Below, piece by piece: positions 6,569-54,143 of a stretch of DNA of 64,000 bases. How positions within the stretch are numbered: position 1 is the stretch's first letter; every line of letters begins with the position of its first letter. The notes under the pieces were generated by a model that searched no databases, was not told where the DNA came from, and worked only from the letters and a program-made list of their open reading frames with translations. The position numbers and the translations under genes were made by a program. The DNA is from Vitrella brassicaformis CCMP3155 (taxonomy: Eukaryota; Protista; Chromerida), in NCBI GenBank assembly GCA_001179505.1, contig CDMY01000243.1:1-64000 (forward strand). The letters are read 5' to 3'.

Positions 6569-8190
6569 CGTTCGTTCGTTCGTTCGTTCGTTTGTTAACG
6601 GACACCGAGGTCCCGGCCTCTGAGGGCAGATGCTGTGTCCATGAAAGCGTTTGTCATATCGAGAAAACTAAGCTGACGGGTGCAAAGAAAGCCAGCGCTT
6701 GCGAGAAGCCACGGCCATCAAAAGAAACTGAGCCAACGCACATTGCACAGGGAGAGAGCGCGAAGTAAGCAATGACCATGCGAACACCAGGGCATCACAA
6801 CGAGCGAGATCCCACCAAAAATACACCACACCATCCGGTGCAGTCAATCCATACATGCGAACAACACGGAAGACCTCCCTACGTGGAGAGCTATAGAGCG
6901 GGCAATAGAAAAGCACATGCAACTCATCCTCAACAGGCGGCACAAGCCACGGCATCGGCCAGCTGGCGGGAGGGCAAGTAGCAGCGCAGAATGGGCAGAA
7001 GCGTAGGAGACGAGACCGATGAGTCAGCCGACCATCTGTGACAGCACAAGTATAGGTGCCGGTGCGGAATGAAAACAGCATACGGCGCTCAGCAGAGGGG
7101 AGAGAAAAATAACATGGGAGAGTGGACAGGGGGTGAACTAGACGATAAAGCCAATCCTGACCAGACTCAAGAATAAAATCACGCAGGAATGCAGGCACAT
7201 ATGTGGGCAGACAGACAAGACAATCGCGATCGAGGCAGCAACGCTGGTTACGAGAGGCAAAAATCCGGCGAACCACCGGGAATGTGTGAGGGAAGTGATG
7301 ATTGAAGAAGGCTGACGCAGTGAAAAGGCATTGTCGTGCAAGGAAGAGAATACGACTGCGAGCAGTAGACCTACTATAACCCCGCCATGGCAACAGACAC
7401 AGAGGAAGTGAAGCAAGGGAGAGGGGTGGAGGAAGAGAAGGCGCGTCACGCAGTACGGTATGATTGGCGCGAATNNNNNNNNNNNNNNNNNNNNNNNNNN
7501 NNNNNNNNNNNNNNNNNNNNNNNNNNNNNNNNNNNNNNNNNNNNNNNNNNNNNNNNNNNNNNNNNNNNNNNNNNNNNNNNNNNNNNNNNNNNNNNNNNNN
7601 NNNNNNNNNNNNNNNNNNNNNNNNNNNNNNNNNNNNNNNNNNNNNNNNNNNNNNNNNNNNNNNNNNNNNNNNNNNNNNNNNNNNNNNNNNNNNNNNNNNN
7701 NNNNNNNNNNNNNNNNNNNNNNNNNNNNNNNNNNNNNNNNNNNNNNNNNNNNNNNNNNNNNNNNNNNNNNNNNNGACGAATCCCATCGTGCGACCAGTGT
7801 GTCAGAGTAGTATGCCTTTGTGAGGCCGACATGAAGATCACGCAAAACAGCGTCAGTAATGGGACCCACATTGGAAATGAGAGTGCGATGACCAGCATAG
7901 CTGAGCAGGGCAGCAAAGCGAGCATACACGTTGTGCTGCTGTCTGTACAGATATGTATGATCCGTCTGCATGTTGCTGAACTGACGGGTGGATGTGTACG
8001 CTGCCTGAGCCTCCAGAAGGGCCTTTTGTGCCAAAGGCCCGCAGCGGCCATTCCATACACGACACAAAAACCCTAGCTGTCTGCGACGCGCTTCATACGT
8101 GACAGAGAAGCGACCGGTCTCACTCAACAGAGCATCATTGCTGACACGAGACGACGCGTGTGCAAGGGGGTGGAGAAGAGGCAGTCCAGC
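6569..8190 (-). mobile_element. 5'-truncated non-LTR retrotransposon (LINE) ORF2 3' end, interrupted by an assembly gap, with (AACG)n tail
   Basis: Post-RT segment SNDALLSETG...RRRQLGFLCRV at 7775-8150. C-terminal PCYF...RMLFSFRTG...RFCPFC...VEDELHVLFYCPLYSSPR is the zinc-knuckle-like end typical of LINE ORF2. Stop at 6668, then ~70 nt of 3' UTR and the tandem tail at 6569-6596. Confidence 0.8.
7475..7774. other. Assembly gap (N run)
   Basis: About 300 N. Confidence 0.99.
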
Positions 8191-13874: not shown

Positions 13875-16800
13875 ATGGAGGTGAGGCCAGACCTGCCGCC
13901 GCTGCCCGCGCGGGGATGGCAGCGCACATTGAGCAGCGGCATCGCCGACCACAATGGATCAGCAGGGGCCGCTCTGAAAGACGCCAACATCGTCGTTCCA
14001 ACGGGGCCTTCAGTGACGCGCAAAGTGGTGGTGCGACGGCCTGCGTATCGCTCCTTTGATGATACCGCTGCGGTGGAGACCTCACCTGAGCGTCGGGAGT
14101 GGGTGCAGAAGGGCGAGCGTGAGAATCTTTCGGGGGGAGATGGTGCGTCGAAGGTCGGCCATGCTGCAGCGACACAGGTACACATGGGTGTGGCCTGTTT
14201 GTCAAAAGTGTTCGTTCGTATGTGTGTCGTGTCGTGTGTGGGGTCAGGTTGGCGAGTCTTTGGACCGCATAGTTTTCATTCACCCTGACAAGCCGCCTGT
14301 CATCTACTCGCACATCGCTCCCGAGGACCGCTACCCCACCACCTCTCCCCTAGCGAGCCTGGTCCCCTCCCGGGCTGCCGACACGTCGGCCACACACATG
14401 CAGTCGCAATACACATCGAAGCCCAAGCCGCCCACACGCCCGGGTGGGAACAACACGACAACACACCCAAGGATGGGGGGAAATGAATCCGTCCGTGTCT
14501 GCTCTGTGTTCGTGGTCATGCAGTCGTGAAGGTCGAGCCCGGTCGGCTGGCCAAGCGTCACGACCCTGTGGCGATGGGTGCTAGGTATCGTCAGGAATGG
14601 CAGAACTTGCCGCGGGTCGTCACGGGGCGTGCGAGGCCCCGACCGGCCACCGACGTTTCACGGCGACTGGGTGAGATGCGGGGCGATGAGGGACGCTTCT
14701 TGTGAGAGTCATGCACTGGCTATGCACGTGTGTGTGTGTGCGTGTGACCTCAGGTTTTGACGATACACATCGTGGCTGATACGATCACCCTGCTGACCGT
14801 AGCTGATAGCAACAGTCGGCGTTGTGCATAATTGTCTATACTTGTTTATTTCCACATGTGCAAGGCAGGCAGCATGCTTCTTTTGGGGGGCTGCAGACAG
14901 ACGGTGTGTGTGGTTTCCTTTGCCCTTTATTGTTTTATCTTTGGTGTGTGCAGTGCATTGGTGTAAGTACCATGTGTGTATATAGACATATACTCGCTCC
15001 GCCCCTGTGCCGGCATGCGTGGACTGAAATGTCGAGTGAGTGGCTGGCTGACGGGCTGTCTGATGCTCTCTCTCCTACTTGTGAACAGACAGACAGGAAG
15101 AGAGGCTGCCTCGCCTCGCGCGTCGCCTGGTGTCCTTCCTGTCTGTGGATGGGATGTCAAGATGGATGGCCGATACGGAAAGGGAGGGAGGGTAACGCGT
15201 CAGTGACCGGGGTGTGACATGCTCATGCTTCATGTGTGGCGGACAGACTCTGTCTGTATTCCAATAAATACTGCCGGAAGAGCCTGGCCAAGAAGATCGC
15301 AGCAGATGATGATCCGCATGCAGAGCAGCCGCAGCCCCCAGACCCCCACCCACCGTCTCCGAGTCCGAGACTCTCCATTGCTTGCTCCTTTTCCTCATGA
15401 TGTATGTAACTGTTGGTCAAGATTCGAGTCCCGGCGATGGGTTTCCTTCAAGCTCAAGCCGGACATTTGTCAGGCGAGGCAAGAGCACGGCCTACCGGAT
15501 GCGCAGGTTCACCCCACTGATGCAGCAGGAGAGAGGCGACGGGACCTACCTTCAACAGCAGCCAGAGAGCTACGCGCTACCCCATGAATGGTACAGGTGA
15601 GAGAAGAGCCTAGAACCCCGCTGATCTGCCGTTCCTCTGTCTGTGTTTGCTTTCGCCAGGCAATGGAGCGCTGCTGTCCCTGTGAGCATCCCCTCGTCTG
15701 CCCCTCCCCCACCTCCCCATCCCGTCACGCCCGCGCCACCTGACGCCTCTCCAGAGCTTCAGGGCGCCACGCTGACTGTCAGCCCTCCTCGGTGGCAGCC
15801 GCCCGTTCCTTCCCCGGCGCCATTGAACTGGGGAGACATTCAGAAGGGCGTCACGGCCCTGTCGTCGCCATCTGTCACGCCGCAGGTCGTGCTGCCGGCT
15901 GGAGGAAGGGATGGCGACACAGCAGGAGAACCAGATGGGGCTGCTCCTGTTGTGACCCACGAGACCGTGAAGCCACAGGTGGGGGAGAAGAAGGTGGTGA
16001 GGCTGAAGAGCACCAAGGGGCGCAAGGGGCTTCGCGAGAGGGCTCCCTACAAGACCCGTATTCCCGCCGATTATGATGGGGGACACTCAGCAGAAGGAGA
16101 GGAAGAGGACTGGGGCCGACTGTCTCCGCAGAATGCCGTCCTGCCGCCTCCGTTTCAACCCCCAGCAGTGACGGCTGTGCAGCCCCCGAAGATCACCGAC
16201 TTGGAGGGTTTGATGTCTCTGCCGACTGTTGTCGTCCCTCCCGAGAAGTTGCTCCCCGAGAGACAGCCATTCAGCGCAAGAGAGCCGCCGGTTGATGTCA
16301 CGGCTGTTAATCATGACGACCGGCCTGTCAGGGGCCCAAAGCAGTGGACGGCGAAGGGCGGGGATGCAATATGGATTCCCCTGACGCCTCCGCAGGTGGA
16401 ATCGAAGGCACACACGGCCAAAAAAGGCAAGGTCACGACGAAGAGGCCAAAGACAGCGTCTTCGATCCTTCAACCTTCAAAGGACGTGAGCCCTTCTTTT
16501 CCATTACAAACCACGCGGAGCAGAATCTCCACTTCTGTCTTTTTTGGCAGGATATCTATGTCAACCGCCTCAAGGCGCTGCGTCTCCACACCGGGGTTCC
16601 CACGCGGAGCCACTCTATCCCTGTGGAGGGCAAGGGCGACAGGGAGGAGCACCCTTTACTCTCACCGCTTCCCAAGGATTTGCCGCAGAGCCGTCTCTGT
16701 GCCTTCCACTCTCAGCCGAAGCGGACGCCCCTCATTTCCCGCCACGAACCGCCCCCAAACGAAGTGAAGCCGGCGCGCCCAGCGACTGCCCCTCTCGGCC

Positions 16801-18581
16801 GATCAGTGTCGGTAGGTGCGCTTGCCAAGAAGTCGAAGGGTCAAGAGCCTCGTGAGCATGTGGTCAAGAGCCCGATACCGTTGACGCCGCCTCGCCGAGA
16901 GCCTGACAAGACGCAGCGAGAGGGGACGCCTGCGGATGGGTTGGCGATGAAGCAGCCTGTTATCTTGAAGGCCCCACCAGTCAAGACCATTGTGGCATCT
17001 TTCGAGGCCAAGGCAAAGCTGTCTTCTGCCAAGGAACTCTCGCCAGGCAAGACCAGCCTCATCATCGATGGCGGCAGCGCCTCACAAGTGACATCCTCCC
17101 ACCCTACCCCTACTAAGCAGAGGGCGATTGTCTCGGCCACCAGAGCACCTACAAAGGCACCCGTGAAGCCGCCATTAGCAGAGCCGCCGCCCAAGATCGA
17201 TCGCAAGACTGCGGCAAGGGAGCGGACAACGGCCTTGCAGAAGGCAGTGGAAGAGCCGCAGAAGCGAGGTGCGTCCCGCACGGATACGCACCCGATACTG
17301 CTGCAGAAAATGTCGAGCGAGAAGCTTGTGGTCTCGAGAGGGGACCAGACACTGAGCGAACACGAGATCCACGCTATGCTCTCGTTTGGAGGTCCGAAGG
17401 CACCTGTGGCTGAGGCGATACCAGCCCATGGACCGCCGCTACACGTGAAGAAACCTGCAGTTCCACTCAAGAGGCCGCCGGCGATCGAAGCCAAGGAGTC
17501 CATCGTCACACCAACGGCACAGGGCATCAGCCTCAAAGTAAAGGCACTAAGAGACCAACAAGCCGGTCTACCGCCGCAGTCAGAGGAATTACTGAAGATT
17601 CCCTCTCCAGCGCGGCCTGGCGAGGATGGCCAAATGGCGCTTCCGAAGCTCGGAGTGGTCTCGTCCCTCCAAGAGAGAATGGCGGCAAAAGCTCGACACG
17701 CCCCATCTGCCATTCACAGGCGGACCCTTCCCGTCAAGCCTCGGTCGTTCATGCCCAAGGCACCATTCCCGATGAGTCCCGCGCAGGAAGAAAAGTTGAG
17801 GGCATGGCTCGAAGAGACAGTGGCGCACCACCTGGCGCAAGTAAATGCCGTCCAAGTGGGCCTCACTCCTGGACAAATGGCAGGATCGCAGGTGCCAAAG
17901 AGTCGGTACAAAGCACCAGCGCCCAACATCGCACGAGTGGAGGCGCGAAGCCCCACAGCTCAGGTCAATGATGTCTCGAAGAACTTCGAGAGCCCGAGGG
18001 ATCAGCTTGTATCGCAGAGTAATGATGGCTCGCGTCCGGCCAGTTCCCAGTCGCCACCGCCTTCGTTGCGACCGTCGTCAGCCAGTGTACATCGACGTGA
18101 GGCGCTGAGCCAACAGAGCCGCGCTACCAAAGACGTGATGGCTGAGGAGGTCAGCGGGGCAGGCGAGAGACAAGGGAGACAGGCATACGTTAATCGTGTC
18201 TTTCTGACTGGCTGCGTCCGTGTATGTCAGCCGGTCGACGAACCTCGTCGCTTCGTGGCTCGTGTGGGCGGGGGTTTCATGAGCTGCTCCACCTTCCTAC
18301 GAGTCGGCACATCACGACCACAAACGCCACAGAGGCAATCACAAGGTCACGTCTCCATAAATTACTTGTGTCTGTCTCATCGTCTGAATGGGCGCCCTGT
18401 GCCCGTGTGTGCAGGTGCCGGCGTTGACGTCGATGTGTATGCTCTGGAGCACGACAGGACCTACCAGCTGACCCGTGACAGCGCCTATACGGCCTGCCTG
18501 GCGCGGCGCGTGGCGCCCCAGACGCTTATCGACGCCGCGCAACAGGCTGAGTTCAGCCAGTCGGTCAAGATAGTTGACTGA
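13875..18581 (+). CDS. Large Pro/Ser/Lys-rich low-complexity hypothetical protein (exon structure uncertain, could be two genes)
   Basis: Long ORFs 15643-16767 and 16344-18581 are joined by a GT-AG intron near 16487-16550. Additional 5' exons lie at about 13875-14650 and 15270-15597. Confidence 0.55.
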
Positions 18582-31774: not shown

Positions 31775-34700
31775 CTAGCCCGTCTCCCTGTTCGGCTGCT
31801 GTTGCTGCTGTTGGGCGTGGGGTGTTCGGCTTCCCGCTGCTGCCTGCACGTGTGCAAAGGGATCAGTGAGAACAGCCGCTGGACCCTCACTACTCGGGGG
31901 CTGCTGCTGCTGCTGCTGATGCTGCTGAACGAGAGATGGTGGCTGTGGGGGCGGGGGCACAGATGGAGGAGGGGAGGCATGCTGCCGTGAGGGAGGCTTG
32001 GGGGAGCCAGTGTGCGGCACCACCCCACGCTGCTGTTGCTGTTCTCTCTCTAGAGGTGGGGTCCTCTCTCTTCCTGTGTCTTGTTGCGACAGCAGGGGAT
32101 GCCGCGTCACACTTCCCACCTCCAGCACATTCGGCGTCGACACACTGTTCGGAAGAGGCGGAATGCTGCTCTCGGGGGGCCGCCGCTGCGCCAGGGCCTG
32201 ATCACTGACGGGCAAAGGACCTGCTCCAGCAGCTGGCCCAGCAATGGAGACGGGAGGCGATGGGCGCACAGGTGACCCCGACAGTGGTGGGACCTCGGCT
32301 GCAGACGACGCAACGGGAGCGCCAGCAGCCGCCGCAGATGATAATGGCGGGAGATGCCCAAAAGACCGGCTGTTGTGCTGCCCCTTGTGCGCGGACGTCA
32401 TTGGTGGATGGATACCTGGCCGAGCGTCCGCCGTAGTGTGGCCGGGCGTTGCTGAGGCACTGAGCCCAGAGGGACTCCTGCTATCCTCCGACGACATTCC
32501 GGGGGCGTTCTGTTGCCAAACCAGCAACTGGAAAGCCGCGGGGGGCACAGATGGACCCATCACCTGGTTGTGTGGCTGCGGGCTGCCTGGGCTGGTCGCG
32601 GGTGCCGCTGGCGCTGCCTCAGGGGTCACAGTGTCACCTTGCTGACCATGTGGACGGTTTTCGCTGGCCCTGTGGACGTCTGTCGGCGCTGTCTGCTGAT
32701 GTCTCATCGATGGATGTGTCGATGCAGGAGGGGTCTGCGCCAGTGGCGGAAGTGCGGGTGGCGGTACGGGCATGGCCTGGGCTGTCATGGATGCCTCGGG
32801 AGATGACGCCGCCGATGGCCTCAGAGTCGACTCGCCCGATGAGGACCCCGACGGTCGCACCACTGGAAAGGGATTCACGCCCGGCAGCCGGTCCTCAGGC
32901 TGCCTCTGGACAGTAGGGGTCAGCACGTGTCCTCCCCTCCCGCTGCCCGGCACAATCTCAGGGGATCCTGTCGTTCCGGTACCGGCGCCGCCTGCACTCA
33001 CTGCTGCAGCCGATGGTCTCTCCTCGGGGCTGTCCTCCTGCCACAGCCTGTCCGGCACGGTCCTCTCTGGCCGGATGAGAGGTGATGGCACATCTGGTGC
33101 TGGCTCGGCAGCTGGCTCCTCATGCGACGCAACAGACGTCCGGTCCTCGCGAGGTCGGCCGGGAGGGACGAGCTGGGAGGAAGCAGACGGATGGTGCGTG
33201 TTGGTCCTGCTGTGGTCCTCATCTATAAGGCAAGGGCCCCGCGCCGCTTGAGGTGGCTGGGGAGGGAACGTGACACCGACGGGCACACGCGGGACAGCGA
33301 CAGGAGGCAGCCGTGCGTCGATCTGGGAAGAGGGGTAGGCCGCCGGAGGCCCCGCCGATGCAGCTGCTGTGTGGCCGGCGAGACTGTGCTGCTGCACTGG
33401 AACATGTTGGCTGTGTTGTTGTTGTTGTTGCTGCTGCTGCACCGGGATTTGGTCCAGAGGGGCCATGTGTTCTCTCTCGGTAGAAGAATGGTGCAGCGAA
33501 TGGTGGTGGACGTCTCGCCGAACACCAATCCCGCCCCCTGTCCCAGCGCTTGCCATCGCGCCGTGACCTCCCATCAGATGCGCGAGAGGCTGCGACCGAG
33601 AGCGGGAGTTCTGTGACTGCATCCAAGCCGGGGATGGCCCTGCCGCATCGTCGAGCAGCTCTGATGCCAGCGGCACGCGCTCGATAGGTCGCTCCTGATG
33701 GGCTGCAGCGAACGAGACGGACGGCGAGGCCTTGTGCGGCGACCTTTCGGGGGTGCGCGGGCCTTGATGAGGTGCATAGCTTCCTTGCTGTGCCATCGAT
33801 AGCGGTGCCTGCAATCAGAGAGACAGCATACACGACAAGCGATATGAGTCGCTCAGTGTTGTTTTCACGCACCTGAGGCCCCGCGTCAGCCTGGACTGCC
33901 TTGTTCTCGCCCGGACTTGATGCTGACGACACCGGCATGGTGCTGGCCGGGTGATGTGCGGGGTAGTGGCCACCCTGACCCGTGGTGGTCGTAGAATGAG
34001 ACGGGTACTCATATGGCTGCTGCTGGGGGATCGCCTGATGTGGGGCATGCGGCTGTGCAGCAGCAGCAGCAGCAGCAGCAGCGGCAGGAGCCGAGACGTG
34101 GTGGTAGCCCCCGACACTTGATTGTATAGACGAGGTGGCCTCTGGAGATCCTCTTTTCTCGAGGTCGTACCCGAAGTGCTGTCTCCCCGCCGCTGATGCC
34201 GCATGCTGGTTCGGTGGGACCCCGTGCATGACCTCTGGCGCTCTGGAAGGCAGACCTTGCTGCTGCCTGAACTCCTCTTGCCTCATCATCTCGCGTCGTC
34301 TCAATTCCTCCTGCTGCCTTCGCTGCTCCTCCTCGAGGCGATTCCTCTCCTCATCCAACCGCGTGTCGGCCGATGGGAAGTGGATCTCTGGATGCGCCGC
34401 ATGCTCGTGCTGAGGCGGGTGCGCCATTGTGGGGTCCGAAATCCCGTGTGGCGGGACACTCTGTGGCGGCAGAGTGTGCGCTCTGACGCCTTCCTGCCGC
34501 TGTGGGCGCGGTGCAGGTGGCTGAGAGCGGGGAGGGGACCGACCGAAGGAAGCAGGAATCGTGGCTGGAGGGGGGAAGTACCCGGCCTCAACATCACTCC
34601 CCCCGCGGCGAGGCGGCAGGTCGTCCCTACTGGGAGCAGGCCCTTGGGCAGAGTGCACTCTCCTGTTTTCAGGAGAAGGAATGGCATCAGGGAAAAGGTC

Positions 34701-37700
34701 CTTTGCTGGGTGAGCCGGCTGGGGTCCTGCGGGAGTGAGCAGGTGGTGCTGAGGGTGCTGCTCGGCAAGGTGCTGGTGCTGCTGTTGCATGTGGTCATAA
34801 TGCCGTCTCTGGTCTGGTTGGATCGGTTCGTGCCTCAGCTGCTCCTCCTGCCCGCGGAGCAGATCCCTCTGGCGCCGCAGGTCTTCCTCACGCAGCCTCT
34901 GCTCCTCTTCTTGGCGCCTCATCTCCTGTCGCCTAGCCTCCTCTTGTTGCCTCATCATCTCACGTTGTCTTATCTCCTCCTGTTGCCTTCGCTGCTGCTC
35001 TTCCTCCATACGACGCTGCTCGGCGAGACGACGCCTCTCCTCATCCAGACGTGGGTCGCCAGCCGAAACAGCGGCGTGGTGGTGTAGCAGCGGCTGATGG
35101 GCTGCCGAGAACTGAGGATCAGACGTCCCTGAGTGAGGGATTTGAAGTGGAGGGAATGGGGCGCCGACGGAATGCTGAGACTGCGAGTGAGGCACCGACA
35201 TCGGCAATGCCTCAGCCCTCGGTGGGCCCCCTCCGCCTGTCACCTCTGGTGTGGTCCTCAATGTGTCAGCTGATGATGGGTGAAGTCCAGCTGTGTCTCG
35301 TGCGCCGCTGGATGGCGATGGTGAGGTGTGGAAGGCGGCCTGCGGAGAAGGGGTTGGCTGTGGGCCCAGTTGAGGGGCATACCACATTGCAGATGACGAC
35401 GCCGACGACGCCACAGATGTTCGGTCGTGTTGCTGAGCAGCACCCAGCGCAGTCTTGTGCTGCATCTCCTGACCCGCCTGCCTTCCATGTCCCGATGAGC
35501 CGTCGATGCCCCCGTACCACGCGCCAGCCGAGGGAGTGGTGCCGCTCTCAGACGGTCGGAAACCAGCCATTTGCGAGTCGCGCTGGCCCTCGTAATAGGC
35601 CCCCTTGATCTCGCCCGGGGGCTGGAGCTGGGGATGAGGCTGATGAGGTCTCGGTTCGGGAGCCCTGTCGGCAGCAATCGAACCAGACACACGCTGCTCA
35701 GGGGAGCCGGCGGGCTGTGAAGCACGGCTGACTGGGGCTGGAGGGAGAATGTCGACCCCTTTCTCGGCGGTGGCGGGTGGATATGAGGAGTCTTCAGGAG
35801 GCCTTGCGTGAGGCTGTGGCGTCTGATGAACTGGTAACGCCGCTTGGCCCTGCATCGGTGGTGTTGCTGGTGCGACAGGCTGCTGCAGCGGCCGAGATGG
35901 ACCTGGCACTGGTACCGCGCTACTGGGGGGCAGTGGCGGGCGTCCTCCACGTGAGGGGTGGGAGGAGTCTCGGGGCACAGGGGCCGGTATACCGAACCAG
36001 TAGTTGCTGGGCTCCACTGGCGAGCCCTCCCGCGGGAGAGTCCGCAAGACGGCCGCTTCGTCGTTGAGACGCCTCTGCGTCAGCAATCGCGCCTCGTCGT
36101 CAGTGATCTTGGGGATGAGGTGGGACGCGTGGTTGGATGGCGGGTACTCCCGCTTGTAGGGATCCTTGCGCAGCGCCTCGTCCTCACTGTCCAGCGACTT
36201 GGCCGACGGCACAGACATCTGTGGCGGGCGGCTGAAGAGCTCGAGCTGCAGCGGGCGATTGTCCTGCAGAGCCGGTCCTGCTGGTAGCTGAATGCTACCG
36301 GCAAACGACACCGGTGCGCCCTCGCCAGGCCGCAAGGTGCCCCTCCATCCCGACGCTGCCTTTGGCTTGCCCACCTTGGCACCATGCATGCCTAGATTGG
36401 GTGAGGTGAGGCTGCCCTGGAATCCCGTTTCTTGCGGCACAGCGAGGGTCGTGTGTGGCCCCTGCCAGGCGAGGTTGGTGAGGCGCCCGGTGCTCATGAG
36501 GTCTCCCGCCTCCGGCAACGTGCTCGTGGTCGACCGCCGGCCCTTGTCCTTCTCCTTGTGACGCGTCTGCGGCTCTCGTGCGTGAAGGGCCCCGGTAGTT
36601 GGCGATCGCTGGGTGCCGAATGACGATGAGGGCAGCGTGGTCGGGCGTCCGTAGATGAGGGGCTCGCCGCTGTCCTGCCTGTCTGGGGGGAACCCTCCAT
36701 GGAACCCTCCACCATAGGCAAACCCAACAGGGCTGCCGACGCGGGGCGGGGACGCTGCGGCTGGCACCGGCCGGCCCAACTCCCGCAAAGGGTGAAACCT
36801 GCACACAGATCACAACACACATAGATCCAGTCAAGCCAGATCCCGCTGTGATTTGGTGTTTGGGTGTCCGTAGACCTACAGAGGGTACGTGTCTTCGTAT
36901 GAGGTCGGAGGTGACACTCGGCCGCCCGCAGCAGGAGCAGCAGCGGCACCCCCATACAACGACATAGACTGTGGCCCTTCGGGTATGCTGATGGGCAAGC
37001 GAGGTGGTCGGGGTACAGGCGGCTGGCCAAGGGCGCTCACAGCCATCCCTCCCAGTGCAGCATATGGCGTGGGCACTTCAGCTGGCCGTGGCTGCTCAGT
37101 CTTGCTGGCTACCGGCAACGAGGGGGCGGCCCGGTGCAGCCACTCAGCCGTCCTCTCGGTCATGCTGCCCGCCTGGGGCGGCTCCGCCACCGGCTGTGCA
37201 ACTGACGGCAGCGGCACTGAGAAGTCCCTGCTGGGCTTCGGCTGCACGGGTGCGCGGAACTCGGGGGCTATCGTGTTGGCAGGGGTGTAGGGAAACCCGT
37301 GGGACACTTCAGCAGCTGGGACGCTTGGCTGTCCAGGGAGAGGAGGGAGGGGAGCAGACACCGCCTCGGGCGGGACTTGAGCACTCGCCACGACATGCGA
37401 GTCCTGATCGAGCCGCCGGCCGTCCGGAAGGACGTAGTGGGCCTTGTTTTCATCGAGTGGCACCTGCTGCCAGAAGGGGCTGGGGAGGTTGGATTCCCAC
37501 TCCGGTCGCTCGGGCATCGGCTGGAGGTTGGATGCTGAGGCGAGCTTGGATGGCGGCACGGGTGCCGGCTGGCCGATGAAGGACGGGGGCTGGATCACGG
37601 TGAAGGGCACCGTGTAGGGCGTCTGCTGCGATGCCGCCCTGTCGGTGGTCGGCAGACGAGTCGCCATCGCACGAACCAAGCTCTGAGCACCGACAAAAGC

Positions 37701-40700
37701 TCATTATCTTGTGTGTTGTGCGTGTATGCCTCTTGCTAAGAGTGAGGCGCACACACCTGGACATGATAAGCGTTGGGCAGACAAAACTTCGCTTTCGACA
37801 TTTTGATGCCCACACTGCATGCAACAACATACGGGACAGGAGGGAAGAGAGCATCTATGCTTGACCCAGCTGGCTGCCTGTTGTCTGCTGTGCGCACGGC
37901 CACACACCTGACAGAGTAGTATACAGCTTGAGCAGCACTCTCGGTGTCGTCGCCCTCGTCCACACCGCCGCGGGCGCACCTCCCCGCCCTGTGCCTGGTT
38001 GTGTTGGGGTGTAGCTGCTGGACGCTCTTGGGAGTGATGTCGCTGGCTGATGGGTGGACAGATGATGCGTCATTGCTCATGGCACTCACGCCATTCCCCG
38101 TGGTGGACGCGGGGATGGAGTTGACGTCGCTTCCCTTGCGGTGCAGCACCTGTACTGATATCGGCCCCTCGATCTCGTCATCCCCCTCACCCAGAGTCAC
38201 GTCGCCTGCGCATTCATACATGACACGACACATGGCCGCTCCATGCCGCTTCATCCTGTCGACTCATCTGGGCGGGCATTCTACCTGCTGTTGATGCCGT
38301 GAGTCTGGGCGGCGACGCGCCTCCCGGGACCTCAAGCCGCGACGGCCGCGAGCCCGGCGATGACTGGGACGCATGAGAGGTGGGTGGGGAGCGGGGCGTG
38401 TGCAGCACGGATGCCTCCTTCTGGCCGGTGCCCGTGCTCGTTGAGGTCTTGCGAAAGCATCGGTCGACGCCAAACGTCTCGAAGACGTGGAAGATGTCCT
38501 CGTCGCGCCAAGGGAAGTTCCCTGGTGATAATTTATCATCCACACGCAACCGCATACGTGTGGCGTGGGGTGGGGTGGGGCTGGCTATGGTCGCTGAGTT
38601 CTGCACTTACCGATGCAGAGAAGGAAGTCGAGTTCGTCGAAGTGTTCGCCGAACTCAAGCGACAGCATCCGCTCCTGTACGCACAGCACATGGTGTTTGG
38701 GTGTGCGACTCATGCAATTGAGAGGTCTGTCGCTCGCTCACCATGAGGTGTGCGCGGCCGCAGTTGGGAGGCCGCACCTCCACCATCCTTGGCCCAAGCA
38801 CCACCTCTGCGTTGGAGTTGGCCAGCGGCCCAGCCCACAAGTGCACCAACAGGTCACGGGACTGCATACACGGCAGCAAACAAGCGAGCCGCGATGTGAC
38901 TCATGCAGCTGTCTGTCTGTCGGTGTGATCGTGCTCGCGTGCGTGTACCTGTTGTTGTCCAAAGTCGGGTAGCGTGTCGTCCCAGTACCACGTGAGGCTG
39001 ACGGTCGTGCGCTCGGTGTATGACCCGGGTGTGTGCTCCTGGAAGCTGTCGAATATCTCCTGCACACCGCTCACCCAGTCGAGGTCGGCCGCCTCGGACT
39101 CGCTCAACAGCTGCACCCACTCGCCCGTCCGCTTCCTGAACCATAAATGACACAGACAGTCAGTCAGTCAGACAGACAAGCAAGATGCTTTTGCGTGTCT
39201 TTATGTGTGTGTTGCTTGTTCACTGGCTGTCTGGCTCTTGAGTTGCTTGTGTGTGTATCACGACCGTACCTATAGACACATCCGTTTTCAGCGGCGAGGC
39301 AGACGGGGAGGTCCTTGAGGAGTCGCTCGAGTGTGGATCTGGGGTGGCTGCTGGTGATGATGACGGTCGTGTCGGGGTCGTTGCCCAGCAGAGTCAACGC
39401 CTCGCGCACCGCCTCAGGAATCTGGATCAGAGACTTGAAGCGCTTCATCGGCATCCCTTAAGGAAGCAATGCCATTGATCACAGAATCAATAGTGAGTGA
39501 AGCAATGAGCAATCAATCAATTAATGACTGCGTGACTCCCCCTCTGTGTGTGCTTGTGTGTTGTGTATGTACATACCTCTGTTGCCCCTGGCGGCGATGA
39601 GCGAGTCGAGAAGGTCGATGACGACCAGTCGCCTGGAGGACGCACGAAGATCCTCCAACACACGCTCAAACGCCAAGATGGGAGGCACCGCCGCACACAC
39701 CTACGCACCAATCACAACACACGGCAAACAAATCGACTTTGTGGTGGTCTGTCTGTCTGTCTGCCTGTTGGGTGTGTGTGTGTACCTCTTCGCTCTCGGC
39801 CGATGCTTCCCTGAGGGAGTTGATGAAGGTCTCGGCCCAGGTCTGGGAGGTGTGCGTGTGCACGTGACGAAAGGCATACCTACACTCACACACACACACA
39901 CACACACACACAGAGGAAGTGGATGCAGCACGTGTTGTGTGTGGTGTTGTTGGTAAGGCAACTCACTCGTGCCTCGACTGCCGTTCTTCAGGAGACATGG
40001 TGAGGGCCTGCTTGATGGCGTCAGCAGTCTCGTCCAGATTCCAGGGGTTGATGCGGATCGAACCAGCACCTACACACGCACACACACGCACAGCTACATG
40101 CTGCCCAGTCATCTGCTGTCTGCAGACTGTAGCTACCGAGCGACTGCGCAGCCCCGGCGAACTCGGACAGAATGAGCACGCCGTGTTTTCCCTCCTGGCA
40201 GGCTATGTACTCGTATGAGACGAGGTTCATGCCATCCCGGAGTGAGCTGATGAAGGCCACATCTGCCACGCGATAGAGCGCCACGAGCTCCTCGAAGGAG
40301 AGGGACTGGTCCAGGTAATGCACCGGTACCGATGCCAAGCCTCCGCGCTTGCCGATGATACGACCAACCAGCTCGTGGACCTGATCACACACGTGAGTGA
40401 CACATTCATTCGATGTTTGCTGTCCATCGGGTGTGCATCTCACCTTTGATTTCAGCCGTTGGTATTCGGGCACGACGGTCCTGGAAGGTACAGCCAGCTG
40501 CACGAGGACGCACCGGTCGATCCACTCTGAGTTCTTCTCCAGGAACTGGTCGAAGCCATTCAGCTTGTGCGGAATACCCTTCATGTAGTCCAGACGGTCC
40601 ACGCCCAATATCACCTGCACATACAGAAGTTAAGTCAGGTAAGGCCACCACCTCCCCCTCGTGCATCACATGAATCCACACGCACCTTCCTGTCACCGAA

Positions 40701-41814
40701 TTTCTGCCTGAGTTGCTGTATGCCGGCGATGACGGACGGCTGCTGCAGCTTCTGGGTGAAGGATTGAGGCTCGATGCCGATGGGGATGGTGGCGCAGTAG
40801 ACGAACACGCCGCCGATGGGTGACGCATCGATGCCCTGTGTGCTGCTCTCGATGCCCATGAGCTGCACGCAGCTGCTCAGGAAGTGCCGCATGTAGTCGT
40901 ACACGTGGAAGGCCACCAAGTTGGACGACAGCAGACCCGAGAGGATTTCAGTGCGAAAGGGCAGCATGCGGAACACCTCTTGTGAGGGGAAGGGCGTGTG
41001 CAGGAACCAACCGATCTTGGAGTCGTTCTTGCGGTCTCGGAGCATCTTGGGGACGAGCATGAGGTGGTAGTCGTGCACCCACACATAGTCGCCGTCCTCA
41101 TAGACATCGAGTATTGCGTCGACGAAGAGCTCGTTGGCCTTGCAGTAGGCCTCCCACTGCTCCATGGTGGTCTCGTTGGCCCCGTGGATGGCATCCATCG
41201 GCGGGGGGATGTAGTGGAACAGAGGCCACAAGACGTTGTTGGCGAAACCGTTATAGTACAGATCGATGATCTCTCGGTCCAAAAACACCGGGTAGCAGTT
41301 GCGCTTGCGGGCCTCGGCCACCACGCTCACCTGATCCCGCTCGAGGATCTCCGCCCCGGGCCAGCCGATCCAGACCATGTCGAAGCCCTTGATGCCCGAC
41401 AGAGCAGAGACGAGTCCGCCGCTGCTCACGCTGTAGCTGTACTCGCCGCTCTCGGACCGCTTGATGGTCATGGGCAGCCGGTTGGCCACGATCAGCAGCT
41501 TGCTCTGTGCCCGCTCCTCCTCGACCTCACTGCCTCCGCCATCGGGCGGGCCAGCCCCAGTGGGCCGCTCCTGCTGCTGCTGGTGGAGGTGGCGCTGCTC
41601 GCTCTGCACCTGCTGCTGCACCCGCTCCCTCTTGTGGATGTGGCGCTTGATCTGCTCCTCAACCAACGTGTCATCACGCTGCAGACGATGTGCCGGCAGG
41701 TACCTGCACACAGATGAACAGCCACACACAGGAATTGCCTCCCCATGAGTCCGTCGCTTTCATGTCGCGTGTGTGTCGGGCTTACGGGCCGAAAACGGAG
41801 GCGGGATGGGACAT
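31775..41814 (-). CDS. TPS1: Trehalose-6-phosphate synthase (GT20) plus degenerate TPP domain plus ~1,900-aa disordered C-terminal tail
   Basis: LLIVANRLP, SSGGLVSAL, WIGWPG, YYNGFANNVLWPLFHY, WVHDYHLMLVP, FLHTPFPS, LGVDRLDYMKG, SLRDGMNLVSYEY; TPP elements AAENG, DFLLCIG, VACSVGIKMSKAKF. Three further in-frame GT-AG introns (37683-37756, 36799-36888, 33809-33872) link to the tail ORFs. Confidence 0.9.
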
Positions 41815-42217: not shown

Positions 42218-43147
42218 ATGGCACTCCCTGACAGCCCATCAACATTCAAAGCGTGGCTCATGGAGGCGTGGGATCTGTGCCTGGATGAGCACAAGGTAAT
42301 GGCGAACGATGCCACTGAATGGAACGATTGATGGATGGGCACGTGCCCTCTGCTACGTGGCGCTGCAGCGCGAGTGTGACCGGAAGGACCGAGAACGCCT
42401 CACGACACTCGCCAGATCATGCGAAGTGGCTGTCCTCAAGTGCGATATGCACCCCTCCTCAAAGACGCCGTCCATCAACGACTACAATCTGGAGGTCGAA
42501 TTGGCTTTCGCAGAGAGAGGAGACCGCACGGTCAAGATATTCATCGATATGGGCCGTCTTGTGCGCCTCGTGGAGGACGAGCGAGTCAGAGAAGGTGCCA
42601 GTGGCGATGAATCTGCTGTGGAGCTTGCGATGGATCTGAGTTGGAGCGTGCAGCTGAGCGGATCTGCCAAGGAGTTGCTGGCGGAATACCACGGCACCGC
42701 CAAGCTGTTTGACGATGGATCTGTGCCGCCCTGTGCGAGTGAGGAGCGTCACGACGTCGAGAATGGTGTGCTCGAGCGACTGCGGGACGCATTGGCGCCC
42801 AACATCGACCCGCCCATCCTGTTCCTCGATCTGCTCCCGTGCATCCCTTTGGACAAGTCGGTGTCGCCCTTCAAGTACCGCCTTGCACTGCTCGAAGACC
42901 GACTTGTCGATGTGAGCCGCTCATACGTTCCTCCCTCACACGAATGGATGACCGCTCTCTCTCTGGGGTGTGTGCGCAGGAGTGTTGGGACGAGGAGGAT
43001 GAGAGTGAAGCCCTCAAATCTTTGGAGGTGGCCAATGATGACGAGGAAGAGGAGGAAGATGAGGCCATGCCGCCACGCCCTGTCCCAGGGCCCGTCTCGG
43101 GTGTGCGCAGCAGCCAGAGAAAGAAGGCCAAGACCAAAAGTGGATAG
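42218..43147 (+). CDS. Hypothetical protein with acidic/basic C-terminus, divergent from TPS
   Basis: Exon 1 MALPDSPSTFKAWLMEAWDLCLDEHK|gtaatg; main exon ...LSWSVQLSG...LALLEDRLVD; last exon ECWDEEDESE...RKKAKTKSG*. Confidence 0.65.
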
Positions 43148-43761
43148 GTAGTCAATCAGTCGGTCGGCCGGCCGGCGACTTTCTGGGCGGATGGGACGAG
43201 TGAAAGGGATGGATGGATGGACGGGTGTGATGCATCAATTGTGTTGTTGTCGGCATGTCGTGGCATTTGGACACATGTACTGCAGGGGGTAGCGTAGCTA
43301 GCTAGCTGTACTGAGTGTGCGCTGGCAAGAATGTGGCACTGAGAAACTTCATGGATGCACTCCACTCCAACGAATCAGAACGTGACAAATATCCTATCCT
43401 CACGCGCCTCATACAAAACATCCAATCCCATACATACTTAATCGATTCGAATCAATCAATCAATCAGCACGCTAGCTGCACCGCTATATATATCGCTGGC
43501 TGGATGCGATGCATGTGAGAGCTGTCTGGTCTGCGGGCACGTACATGTATGTCCACACGCATTGCATTCTTGCAACGGCTCCAGAAACTAATTGCAACAG
43601 AACATCAACAAAACCGCTGGCCGGCGGATCGTCGCCCATCCAAAAGAGGGCGCGCCCTCAGGCTGCCGTAGGCCCCATGTCTGTCTGTCTGTCCATTGTC
43701 TGTCCATGTGGTTGGTGTGTATGCTATGGTAGGTACCCACACTGCAGCTAGTGCAGGTGCG

Positions 43762-47461: not shown

Positions 47462-48282
47462 CGACAAACAAACGGCCGATACGCACGAAGCAACCGAAGC
47501 GGACGCTGGCGCCCGGATACTGTGAGAAAGGCGGCTGGTTGTGTATCCAGTATGCAAAGTAGCGGCTTAATTCGAAGATGCGTGTGGCCTCTGAGCGATC
47601 TGTATCTGCGCTAGGGCAGCGAAATGCACCGTGAAAGACTTGCAAGCTTGGGCTGGCTGGCGCAAGAGTGGAAGACAGGGGTGCACACAGCAGCTCGTAG
47701 CCCTTCTGCAGCTCGTCTGGCGTGGAGGGAACCCCCTGCTGAAGGATACACACACCCTTCCCTTCCGGACGAAGAGTGGACGGGCATCCATTCCATCCTG
47801 GAAGGCACCCACGGCAGGCAGCGGCATGGCATCAGGTGAGGGGGGAAGGGCGGATCGACATTGACGGAGGGGAGGGGCGCACACGCACTTATCTACTCGC
47901 ACAACCACACAATCCCATCGACCAGTGAGGCCAGTCAGTGTGTGTGCGCAGCCAGGGGGAGGGCACTCTAGCCGCCTGCACACGTGGCAAAGGCGCCCAG
48001 TGACGGTTTGTTGCCGTGTCTCTGTCAGGTTGAGATGACTGCGGGCGAGAGGGTCTCTCTGGAGGCATGGTGTGGTCAGGGCCGCCCCACTCTTTCATAA
48101 CTCAAGACCAACAGCGCGCCCGCCACACACACAGCCTCCTGGCCAGCCTGCAGCACCTGACAAGACCCTCTTCGACATCTGTACCAGCACGAACACCCCC
48201 AGCGTCTTCCCGCCCGCCCCAAGCCCACGCCTTGCCGACGAGTGAGTCGACCACCGCCGGCCGGTCCGTCGTGTCGTCAATT

Positions 48283-50875
48283 ATGGGACAGTACTTCTCT
48301 GCCAACACCGCCAACAACAACCAAGGGGGAGCTGCGCAGAGATACCAGAGACCACAAGCTGCACCAGGTGGTGCAGCCACAGCCATGGACACCGACTACT
48401 ACGCCCGACCGCCCCACCACCCCCCCACCAGTGGGCAGCCACCAGCCGCCAGCAGGTACCAGAGCCTCCGCGTGACGCCCTGCTCAAGGCCCACCCAGCA
48501 GCTTCAGCGACAGCAGCAGCATCAGCAGCATCCGAATCAGGCATCGCCCACCGAGATGCCCCCCAACAAGGGCCTGCTGATGGGCGACGCGCGGTTCCAG
48601 AAGTGCCTGTCTGGCGACAGCATCACGTCGGCGTGCAGCACCCACGTGCCGAGCAGCCCCAGCTCGAGCCGCAGCAGCAGCACGGGAGGCACCCCTGCTC
48701 ACTTCATCCTCAGTGAGATGACAGGCGGTCACCACGGTGGCATACCCGGTGGGCATGGACAGCTCAACGAGCTCTCCGCTGCCATGCAAATCGAGCCCAC
48801 CCACCAGCACCCCCACCAGCACTCACACCAGCACCACAATCAGCCGGCCAGGCGCAGCGTGACGTCGCCCGACGGATCAACTGTCCCTGTGGGTGGCGAC
48901 TACCACTGGGGGCAGCTGGGCCACCCGAGCCAGCAGCCCAGCCGTGATGCGGCGGGGGATGGGATGCCCAGCGAGCTGAGGAACACACTGCTGGCGTCCG
49001 CGGCGCAGGAGATGGTCGACTCGGGCTACTTCCCGGGCCAAGACGATGTCACCGACATGGCCAGCGCCTTCAGGAGGGTGAGCAAGCCACTCAATCGCCC
49101 ACTGACCAACACACAACGTGCTCGCTGCCTGTCTGTCTGTCTGTCTGCAGGCGCCGTCTCGTGTGGCGAGTGTCCCGAGTGACGGTGGTGCCGGCAAGAC
49201 GCCCGTGCAGACAGGCGCCTTCTACCCCTACCAGTCGACCCGCTCCACCCCCACCCCATCCCCGCCCCCCCTCCAGGACGAACATCCCCCGCCCTGCCCC
49301 CCCTTCGTCAGCCCCACACCACCACCACCAGCCCCCAGCGCTGCTGGGGTATACTCCCACACCCACACGCATCGAAGCGACAGGCGCCACAGCCTCGCCT
49401 CCGACTACGACGTGCGGGCGGCCCATTCATCGCACCAATCGCACCAATCGCAATATGCGTCGGTGTCTGTCTCATCGCACCATCAGCAGCATCAGCAGCA
49501 GCAGATGTTTCTCACGCCGCACGTGCGGCTGCGCGAGGCGGGTCTACTGCAGCAGCAGGACCCCCACCACAGCCTTAGCCGGGCGGGCACCTTCCCGCCA
49601 CCCTGCCCGCCATATAGCTTCGACCCCCGCTCACAGCCGGGCGGCGAGGGGAGCAACGACGGCTTTGACGTGTCGATGGAGGAAAGATCCCGGCGAGGTG
49701 GGCTGATGATGGGCGGGGCCTTTGGCGGGCGAGGCGACCAGATGCGTGACAGTGTGATGGACCGTGGTGGCCCACCCACGACCGGCCCCCCGTGTGTGTC
49801 GCCCTCGTCCCCCTTCCCATACATCCTCCCCACACACCCTCCTGGCCGCGGGATGCATCACGGCCATGGGCAGCAGCGGCGTGAGCGGGACGAGACGTGT
49901 GGGCCGTACCGGTTTGAGCCGCATGACCAGGAGAAGCTGGCGCAGCTGTCGCATGACGACCTCATCCAGGCGATATCATGCCTCCTGGGTGCTATCACCA
50001 GCAGCGACAGACAGCCAGGACAGGTCAGCGGGATGGATGGTCCATATGTATACCTGTCTCACAATTCGAGTCTACGTGTGGTTATGGTTGTGGTTGTGGT
50101 GTGTGTGGCAGGTGACGAAGTTTGACGCGGTGCGCGTGCCTGGGATCTCCGTGAGGGAGTACTTCATCAGGTGGGCGAGGTGTGTTGTGCAGGTGCGTGT
50201 AGGGGTGCATGGCATGGCATGTGTCGTTGTGTCGTTGTGTGGATGCAACCATCGGTAACGTGCAGGTTGGCTGAGTTCTTCAGCTGCAGCCCCACGTGTC
50301 ACCTGCTGTCGCTGATCTATATCGACCGCATCGTCAAGTGCACACCTAACTTCAAAGTCGACGCTCTCAACATACACAGGTATGTTGTACCAATCACACC
50401 TCAATCCACCCATCCATCCATACATCCATCCATCCAATACGTGCCTGCCTGCCTGCCTGCCTTCCTGCCTGCGCCAGGTTGCTGGTGACGAGCACCATGC
50501 TGGCCGCCAAGTTTTACGACGACAAGTTCCTCAGCAACGCCTATTATGCCCAGGTAGGCACACGAGCCCACTCTCTCTACTGCTGATATGGTATGGCTGA
50601 TAAATACGACTGGTCGGTCGGTGAATGTCCATCAATCCATCAGGTGGGTGGTGTGAGCACCAAGGAGATCAACCGGCTGGAGCAGCGGTTCCTAGCGCTG
50701 CTCGACTACCGCCTCGTTGTCGTCCCCCACGAGTTCCACCAGTACTCCAACTACGTCATCTCACTCGCACAGGGTACGGACGGCACCATCCACCATCCAA
50801 CTCAACTCACACAGACACACACACAGATATGGACTCTCTCCCTCTGTTTGTGTCTCAGTGATGCGTGGGGGCTGA
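48283..50875 (+). CDS. P/U-type (PHO80-like) cyclin with long His/Gln/Pro-rich N-terminus and MGxxxS start
   Basis: FDAVRVPGISVREYFIR, LLSLIYIDRI, NIHRLLVTSTMLAAKFYDDKFLSNAYYAQVGGVSTKEINRLEQRFLALLDYRL. Confidence 0.92.
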
Positions 50876-53843: not shown

Positions 53844-54143
53844 NNNNNNNNNNNNNNNNNNNNNNNNNNNNNNNNNNNNNNNNNNNNNNNNNNNNNNNNN
53901 NNNNNNNNNNNNNNNNNNNNNNNNNNNNNNNNNNNNNNNNNNNNNNNNNNNNNNNNNNNNNNNNNNNNNNNNNNNNNNNNNNNNNNNNNNNNNNNNNNNN
54001 NNNNNNNNNNNNNNNNNNNNNNNNNNNNNNNNNNNNNNNNNNNNNNNNNNNNNNNNNNNNNNNNNNNNNNNNNNNNNNNNNNNNNNNNNNNNNNNNNNNN
54101 NNNNNNNNNNNNNNNNNNNNNNNNNNNNNNNNNNNNNNNNNNN
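53844..54143. other. Assembly gap (N run) flanked by G/C homopolymers
   Basis: About 300 N between poly-G and poly-C tracts. Confidence 0.99.

Follow-up and report, generated by a model that had tools for sequence, protein, structure and literature searches.

Within the alveolates, proteins in which trehalose-6-phosphate synthase (TPS) is joined to trehalose-6-phosphate phosphatase (TPP) have been described from apicomplexan parasites, whose T6PS-TPases were reported to exceed 1,400 amino acids (aa) (PMC2935371). The Toxoplasma gondii homologue TGME49_297720 has the order CBM20-TPS-TPP in 1,222 aa, and assays of the recombinant enzyme failed (PMC12607534). A disordered segment on a related enzyme is known from Cryptococcus neoformans, whose Tps1 carries a disordered insert of 92 aa that is dispensable for thermotolerance and for survival of osmotic stress (PMC11317593). 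Vitrella brassicaformis is a free-living photosynthetic relative of the apicomplexan parasites (PMC4501334), and here we analyse a TPS-TPP gene in a 64,000-nucleotide (nt) stretch of contig CDMY01000243.1 of V. brassicaformis CCMP3155 (hereafter the window). Reading along the minus strand, the gene extends from about 41814 down to 31775, and its enzyme exons run in frame into a very long tail.

Our reading, to which we assign a probability of roughly 70%, is that the locus is one nuclear gene for a TPS-TPP fusion of the bifunctional type, extended by a disordered, lineage-specific tail of 1,920 residues. The enzyme fusion is known, and the exceptionally long tail is the new part. A model of 17 exons gives a coding sequence of 8,697 nt without an internal stop, with introns of 63–134 nt, and its product of 2,898 aa consists of 978 aa of enzyme followed by the tail (267 + 1 + 975 + 677 residues). 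The first-pass annotation of this DNA, made from the sequence alone, had expected a product of about 3,000 aa, where the model gives about 2,900. Introns 12–16 of the model were verified by RNA, whereas introns 1–11 (11 of the 16) and the start codon at 41814 are predictions only, the introns having been fixed from GT-AG sites, continuity of the frame and homology to Tps1 and TPP.

The junctions between enzyme and tail were followed in four public runs (X1, X3, X6 and X7), which were compared as assembled contigs over 32400–38390. The contigs of X1 and X3 were unspliced, contained no indels and differed from the window by at most one letter per contig, below the reporting threshold, so that we regard both runs as genomic DNA. 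The contigs of X6 skipped five intervals whose plus-strand ends are CT..AC, corresponding to GT..AG on the minus strand; since it lacks five GT-AG introns, X6 is cDNA. In this RNA the tail exons are spliced in frame to the enzyme exons. A single contig (X6 contig 12) runs through 38109–37908, 37814–37757 and 37682–37094 and thereby joins a TPP-like exon, a micro-exon of 58 nt and tail exon 1. Tail exons 1 and 2 are linked by X6 contig 11 and tail exons 2 and 3 by X6 contig 8, and the reading frame is kept at each of the three tail junctions.

These contigs bear out most of the gene structure that the first-pass annotation had proposed, namely a single gene that passes from TPS-TPP in frame into a tail of about 1,900 aa, a tail that begins at 37682 and ends at 31775, a phase-0 intron between TPP and tail, which was recovered as an exact joint, and two further canonical introns that keep the frame, both of which were seen as joints in RNA. 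Its lengths for the tail open reading frames (ORFs), about 265, 970 and 680 aa, were right in substance, the exact values being 267 (plus 2 nt), 975 and 677. Two details differ from that proposal. The last TPP motif had been thought to lead through the phase-0 intron directly to SLVRAMAT; the intron and SLVRAMAT both stand, but there is an extra intron of 93 nt (37907..37815), and the “VAC” of the presumed motif is intronic. The spliced protein reads AVYYSVS, then VGIKMSKAKFCLPNAYHVQ, then SLVRAMAT, and the true last enzyme exon is the 58-nt micro-exon. The 93-nt intron is open in frame by chance, so the micro-exon was hidden in the ORF listing. The second detail concerns intron 15, whose donor GT consists of the final G of a CTG codon together with the T of the TAG with which the first tail ORF ends; therefore, splicing removes the apparent stop. 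The locus holds two traps for annotation: one is the 58-nt micro-exon, the other the overlap of a splice donor with an apparent stop codon.

The coding frame contains no stop over the 975 + 677 codons of tail exons 2 and 3, where the other five frames contain 10–38 stops each. Over all 267 + 975 + 677 tail codons there is likewise none, whereas each alternative frame of these exons shows 4–38. Because a random frame at this base composition meets a stop about every 40 codons, the open tail frame is not due to chance. It is also unlikely to be an artefact of assembly, because the DNA of X1 and X3 matches without indels, although X1 or X3 may be the source data of the assembly itself. The coordinates of the model are collected in Table 1.

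Table 1 Exons, introns and RNA-supported junctions of the TPS-TPP-tail gene (positions in the window).
Feature	Position	Strand	Evidence
Exon 1 (29 nt), proposed start ATG 41814..41812	41786..41814	-	predicted only
Intron 1 (82 nt, GTAAGC..CAG)	41785..41704	-	predicted
Exons 2–5, Tps1-type GT20 domain	41703..40686, 40614..40444, 40380..40137, 40069..39967	-	PF00982, Tps1 homology; introns predicted (homology and GT-AG)
Exons 6–14, end of TPS domain, linker and TPP-like (HAD IIB) domain with low-complexity inserts	37757..39879	-	PF02358; part of the introns seen in RNA
Interval skipped in X6 (79 nt, GT..AG)	38284..38206	-	X6
Interval skipped in X6 (93 nt, GT..AG)	37907..37815	-	X6
Exon 14, 58-nt micro-exon, last strand of TPP-like domain (VGIKMSKAKFCLPNAYHVQ)	37814..37757	-	both junctions in RNA run X6
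Intron 14 (74 nt, phase 0), enzyme/tail junction	37756..37683	-	joint 37682->37757, X6 contig 12
Tail exon 1 (exon 15), 267 codons + 2 nt, P/A/S/V-rich	36880..37682	-	X6 contigs 12 and 11 over its two ends
Intron 15 (81 nt, phase 2)	36879..36799	-	joint 36796->36878 (cut +2), X6 contig 11
Tail exon 2 (exon 16), 975 aa, predicted disordered	33873..36798	-	X6 contigs 9, 10 and 11 and X7 contigs on the exon
Intron 16 (64 nt, phase 0)	33872..33809	-	joint 33807->33872 (cut +1), X6 contig 8 and X7 contig 14
Tail exon 3 (exon 17), 677 aa + stop TAG (31777..31775)	31775..33808	-	X6 contig 8, ~31897 to 34047, spanning intron 16

Over the synthase half, the Pfam profile PF00982 (cut-off 32.5 bits) gave scores of 295.5 and 181.5 bits, and profile positions 2–452 were covered exon by exon. 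The closest solved structures were those of fungal Tps1 (5hvm, E = 1.6e-83 over the N-terminal half; 5huv, 1e-29 and 1.6e-17). The predicted exons 3 and 4 could be checked in this way, because their ends abut without a gap in the numbering of Candida Tps1 (275–329, then 331–411). The proposed start codon is the sole ATG that reaches the GT20 frame via a consensus donor and acceptor. When aligned with the Tps1 structures of A. fumigatus and C. albicans, the domain keeps NRLP, SGGL, LWPLFHY, HDYHL, GVDRLDYMKG and PSR, together with RDGMNLVSYEY and SEFAGAAQSLG (LSEFAGAAQSL), all of which we take, as in OtsA and Tps1, to be substrate-binding motifs. As these motifs are intact, the GT20 half is probably an active uridine diphosphate (UDP)-glucose:glucose-6-phosphate glucosyltransferase.

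An N-terminal CBM20 was looked for at the locus and none was found. Of the 27 places in the genome that match the profile PF00686, none lies on the contig of this gene (C243) or on the two other contigs with GT20 loci (C261 and C86). At the present locus there is no room for such a domain, because a divergent plus-strand ORF starts at 42309, leaving about 500 base pairs between the two starts. That the divergent ORF (42309–43151) begins so close upstream of the proposed TPS start implies a short promoter region shared by the two genes. A second frame, at 42839–43147, also looks coding within this neighbour, and the neighbouring gene probably has an intron.

The match of the following domain to TPP was weak. 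PF02358 gave 31.5 bits at 38904–39167 (cut-off 27) and 26 bits at 39167–39457, and 28 bits in another search. The motif I strand, in exon 7 (region 39577–39700), reads LVVIDLLDSL, that is, DLLDS and not DxDGT, and the motif IV position, in exons 11 and 12 (region 38521–38674), reads CIGNFPWRDEDIF, with GNF and not GDD, both positions having been aligned by eye to the canonical LDYDGTL and GDDxxDEDMF. Provisionally, neither the DxDx(T/V) of HAD motif I nor the acidic pair of motif IV (GDD/GDxxxD) was found. A search of the PDB with the motif I exon gave chance matches only. The TPP-like domain appears to be without the HAD catalytic acids of motifs I and IV, and it is probably a structural or regulatory domain rather than a working phosphatase.

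The tail was described by the first-pass annotation as Pro/Gln/His-rich. Proline and glutamine are indeed abundant, but histidine makes up 4.8%, and Pro/Ala/Ser/Gln-rich is the more exact description (P 16%, A 11.6%, S 10.2%, Q 8.5%, G 7.4%, R 7.3%). In 55 of 60 consecutive windows of 60 aa, P, Q, S, A, G, H and T together account for 52–82% of the residues, while hydrophobic residues take 10–27% per window. There is almost no tandem repeat at the DNA level, so the tail is biased in composition and not repetitive. The polyQ and polyA runs noted earlier could be counted: one run of ten alanines is in tail exon 2, and glutamine runs of eight, six and six are in tail exon 3, which is P/A/S/Q-rich. 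Glutamine and asparagine together amount to 7.5–10.8% per tail exon, with a maximum of 17 in any 60 residues, and a composition count found no prion-like Q/N enrichment over about 60 aa or more in the tail, which counts mildly against a classic prion-like domain. Ser/Thr-Pro sites number 46.

Structure prediction was consistent with this composition. For the 975-aa exon, AlphaFold2 placed 799 of 975 residues (82%) below 50 in the predicted local distance difference test (pLDDT), although the run was made from a single sequence and low pLDDT alone is weak evidence of disorder. Only four helices were predicted in this exon, among them 582–656 (mean pLDDT of 74–95 in 10-residue blocks), 661–680 and 810–847. 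For the 267-aa exon, the predicted template modelling score was 0.14, with almost no secondary structure. The confident helices, 582–656 and 810–847, are E/R/Q stretches and belong to a module of about 85 aa that is duplicated inside the 975-aa exon (residues ~550–660 and 780–850), in which a His-rich lead is followed by D(P/T)RLDEER(R/N)RL and then by the E/R/Q helix. The two helix copies are 75 and 38 residues long and have about one hydrophobic residue per 5–12 positions, as judged by reading the sequence; they are candidates for a charged single alpha-helix of the ER/K type or for the coiled coil proposed in the first-pass annotation. With its biased composition, few hydrophobic residues and no predicted fold, the tail is, by these predictions, almost entirely disordered.

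No Pfam family and no credible NCBIfam family was found on the tail exons; an NCBIfam match to carbonic anhydrase, at 16.6 bits against a cut-off of 221, was discarded as noise. In the genome (72,700,666 bases in 1,064 contigs; PMC4501334), each of the three tail exons is single-copy. Word searches with each tail exon separately gave no match among proteins of 0.55–1.75 times the query length, the range visible to these searches, which are silent on kin of the tail of about 3,000 aa. A HMMER search with the 975-aa exon against 1.84 billion representative proteins found no credible relative, and a feature search of the ESM Atlas with the helical module gave no usable match. Two HMMER matches at E ~1e-3 were rejected as compositional, being to E/R-rich helices in unrelated proteins. 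The same library returned no match of the exon to itself, so its coverage of chromerid proteomes is uncertain and the lack of relatives carries less weight; either the deposited Vitrella model is without this exon or the proteome lies outside the library.

Two further GT20 loci are present in the genome, at C261:64141–66611 (+) and C86:136182–137585 (+). The former has TPS and a TPP-like part with FFDHEGTL at motif I, and at the latter TPS alone was seen. No long ORF follows the enzyme at either locus, other genes lying within a few kilobases, and the tail is on this ground specific to the C243 paralogue. The first-pass annotation held that a tail of this size is without precedent among known TPS enzymes, which agrees with both the published relatives and these two paralogues, within a survey that was not exhaustive. 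Its view of the locus as the strongest candidate for a new system in the window was overstated, in that neighbouring genes have similar P/Q/S/H-rich ORFs (15643–18581 and 48067–50125, both on the plus strand, with frames of 335–745 aa). Low-complexity coding sequence is common in the Vitrella genome. Disordered or low-complexity extensions are also common in apicomplexans and their algal relatives. The assembly is interrupted twice in the window, by gaps of exactly 300 N at 7475–7774 and at 53844–54143.

Several points weigh against the single-gene reading. The word depth of X6 was 29.6 over exon 17 and 4–8 over exons 13–15, an excess that could reflect 3′ bias or an extra internal transcript; contig depth cannot rank the parts of a gene. 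Contigs drop rare isoforms and cannot prove a single molecule from exon 1 to exon 17, and a tail-less product, or a tail-only transcript from an internal start, is possible. That the tail is translated is a step that we infer. The GC content at third codon positions (GC3) is 0.63–0.72 in the tail exons (31778–37682) against 0.87 in the synthase exon (40686–41702), with introns at about 50% GC, and the low value in the tail points to codon selection that is weaker there, or else to an origin that is younger or different. The alignment of the two HAD motifs by eye and the missing self-match of the 975-aa exon belong to the same list.

Some of these points are shared by the alternative that survives best, in which the tailed mRNA is a minor form and the main products are a tail-less enzyme of about 980 aa, a separate tail protein, or both. 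The tail-less enzyme would come from retention of intron 14 or early polyadenylation, and the tail protein from an internal promoter. A retained intron 14 does bring a TAG nine codons past the exon-14 donor (...HVQ VCAPHS, then the stop), and besides the several-fold depth of exon 17 over exons 13–15 and the difference in GC3 between enzyme and tail exons, the contigs of X7 lie on the tail only. However, every junction seen in RNA was spliced and in frame, and an intron was retained in none of the RNA contigs listed. The depth pattern is the one expected from 3′ bias on an mRNA of about 9 kilobases, and the enzyme's frame is carried on across all three tail introns, which would be needless for a separate gene. 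We regard this alternative as unlikely, if still one to be reckoned with.

A condensate or stress-coupling role of the tail is possible. In its full form, this explanation makes the tail a condensate or scaffold module through which osmotic or desiccation stress would act on the synthesis of trehalose-6-phosphate (T6P), and we consider it improbable. The length of the tail, its low complexity and predicted disorder, its short runs of glutamine and of alanine, its two charged helices, and a frame kept open across 1,920 codons would all suit such a module, and in T. gondii phosphosites of the homologue outside the catalytic domains alter starch accumulation under stress (PMC11414933). On the other hand, glutamine and asparagine do not exceed 11%, so that the composition is not prion-like, no conserved relative was found from which constraint on the sequence could be argued, and unrelated genes nearby have low-complexity ORFs of a comparable kind. 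The disordered domain of C. neoformans Tps1, moreover, can be dispensed with for both thermotolerance and osmotic stress survival (PMC11317593).

More speculatively, the protein could be a hub of T6P signalling, in which an active Tps1-type synthase is combined with a dead phosphatase, T6P is not removed in cis, and a phospho-regulated tail tethers or concentrates the enzyme, for example near storage-glucan metabolism. The charged helices would then serve as spacers or dimerising elements, and the tail might be an alveolate solution with a role analogous to that of the CBM20 in the Toxoplasma homologue. We hold this to be very unlikely. That the gene is an artefact, either a mis-assembly or a chimeric RNA contig joining two unrelated genes, is scarcely credible: the two 300-N gaps lie elsewhere in the window, and Logan contigs can be chimeric, but two DNA runs from two studies cover 32400–38390 with the close agreement described above, and each RNA joint falls exactly on GT..AG and keeps the frame, one of them in two runs.

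Under the preferred reading of one gene with a disordered extension, a protein of about 2,900 aa would be made and the tail translated with it. The synthase would be active and the TPP-like domain inactive, and the tail would be a lineage-specific low-complexity appendage of the sort that other Vitrella genes carry, without a part in catalysis. It may, at most, act as a flexible spacer, a docking surface or, given its Ser/Thr-Pro sites, a phospho-regulated appendage for the synthase, the last of these being loosely comparable to the effect of phosphosites in the Toxoplasma homologue on starch accumulation. Should the tail be translated, some two thirds of a metabolic enzyme would be disordered sequence without detected relatives, and the gene would then offer a clean natural example in which to ask whether extensions of this type act or are tolerated baggage. 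An intact synthase next to an apparently dead phosphatase also bears on the output of alveolate “TPS-TPP” proteins, which may be trehalose or mainly the signal T6P.

When the locus is set beside the described systems, CpT6PS-TPase of Cryptosporidium and TGME49_297720 are likewise alveolate, place TPS before TPP in one intron-rich gene and have large low-complexity stretches outside their catalytic cores (PMC2935371, PMC11414933, PMC12607534). They differ in size (1,222 aa for TGME49_297720 and above 1,400 aa for apicomplexan T6PS-TPases, with 2,898 aa in Vitrella), no C-terminal tail has been described for them, and the Toxoplasma protein has a CBM20, whereas none was detected at the Vitrella locus. 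C. neoformans Tps1 also has a disordered, lineage-restricted segment of unknown function on a Tps1 core (PMC11317593). That segment, however, is an internal insert of 92 residues conserved in close relatives, whereas the segment in Vitrella is C-terminal, has 1,920 residues and is without detected relatives. With fungal Tps1 (5hvm, 5hut/5huv and 6jbi), the GT20 domain aligns end to end at high similarity and the motifs for UDP-glucose and for glucose-6-phosphate are conserved, but the fungal enzymes stand alone at about 480–515 aa, whereas the Vitrella domain is followed by a TPP-like domain and by 1,920 further residues. Plant class II TPS proteins and yeast Tps3 and Tsl1 are likewise TPS-TPP-like; one domain or both are regarded in them as regulatory and without catalysis, and their synthase domain is the degenerate one. 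The Vitrella protein shows the opposite pattern, in that its synthase motifs are intact and its phosphatase motifs look degenerate.

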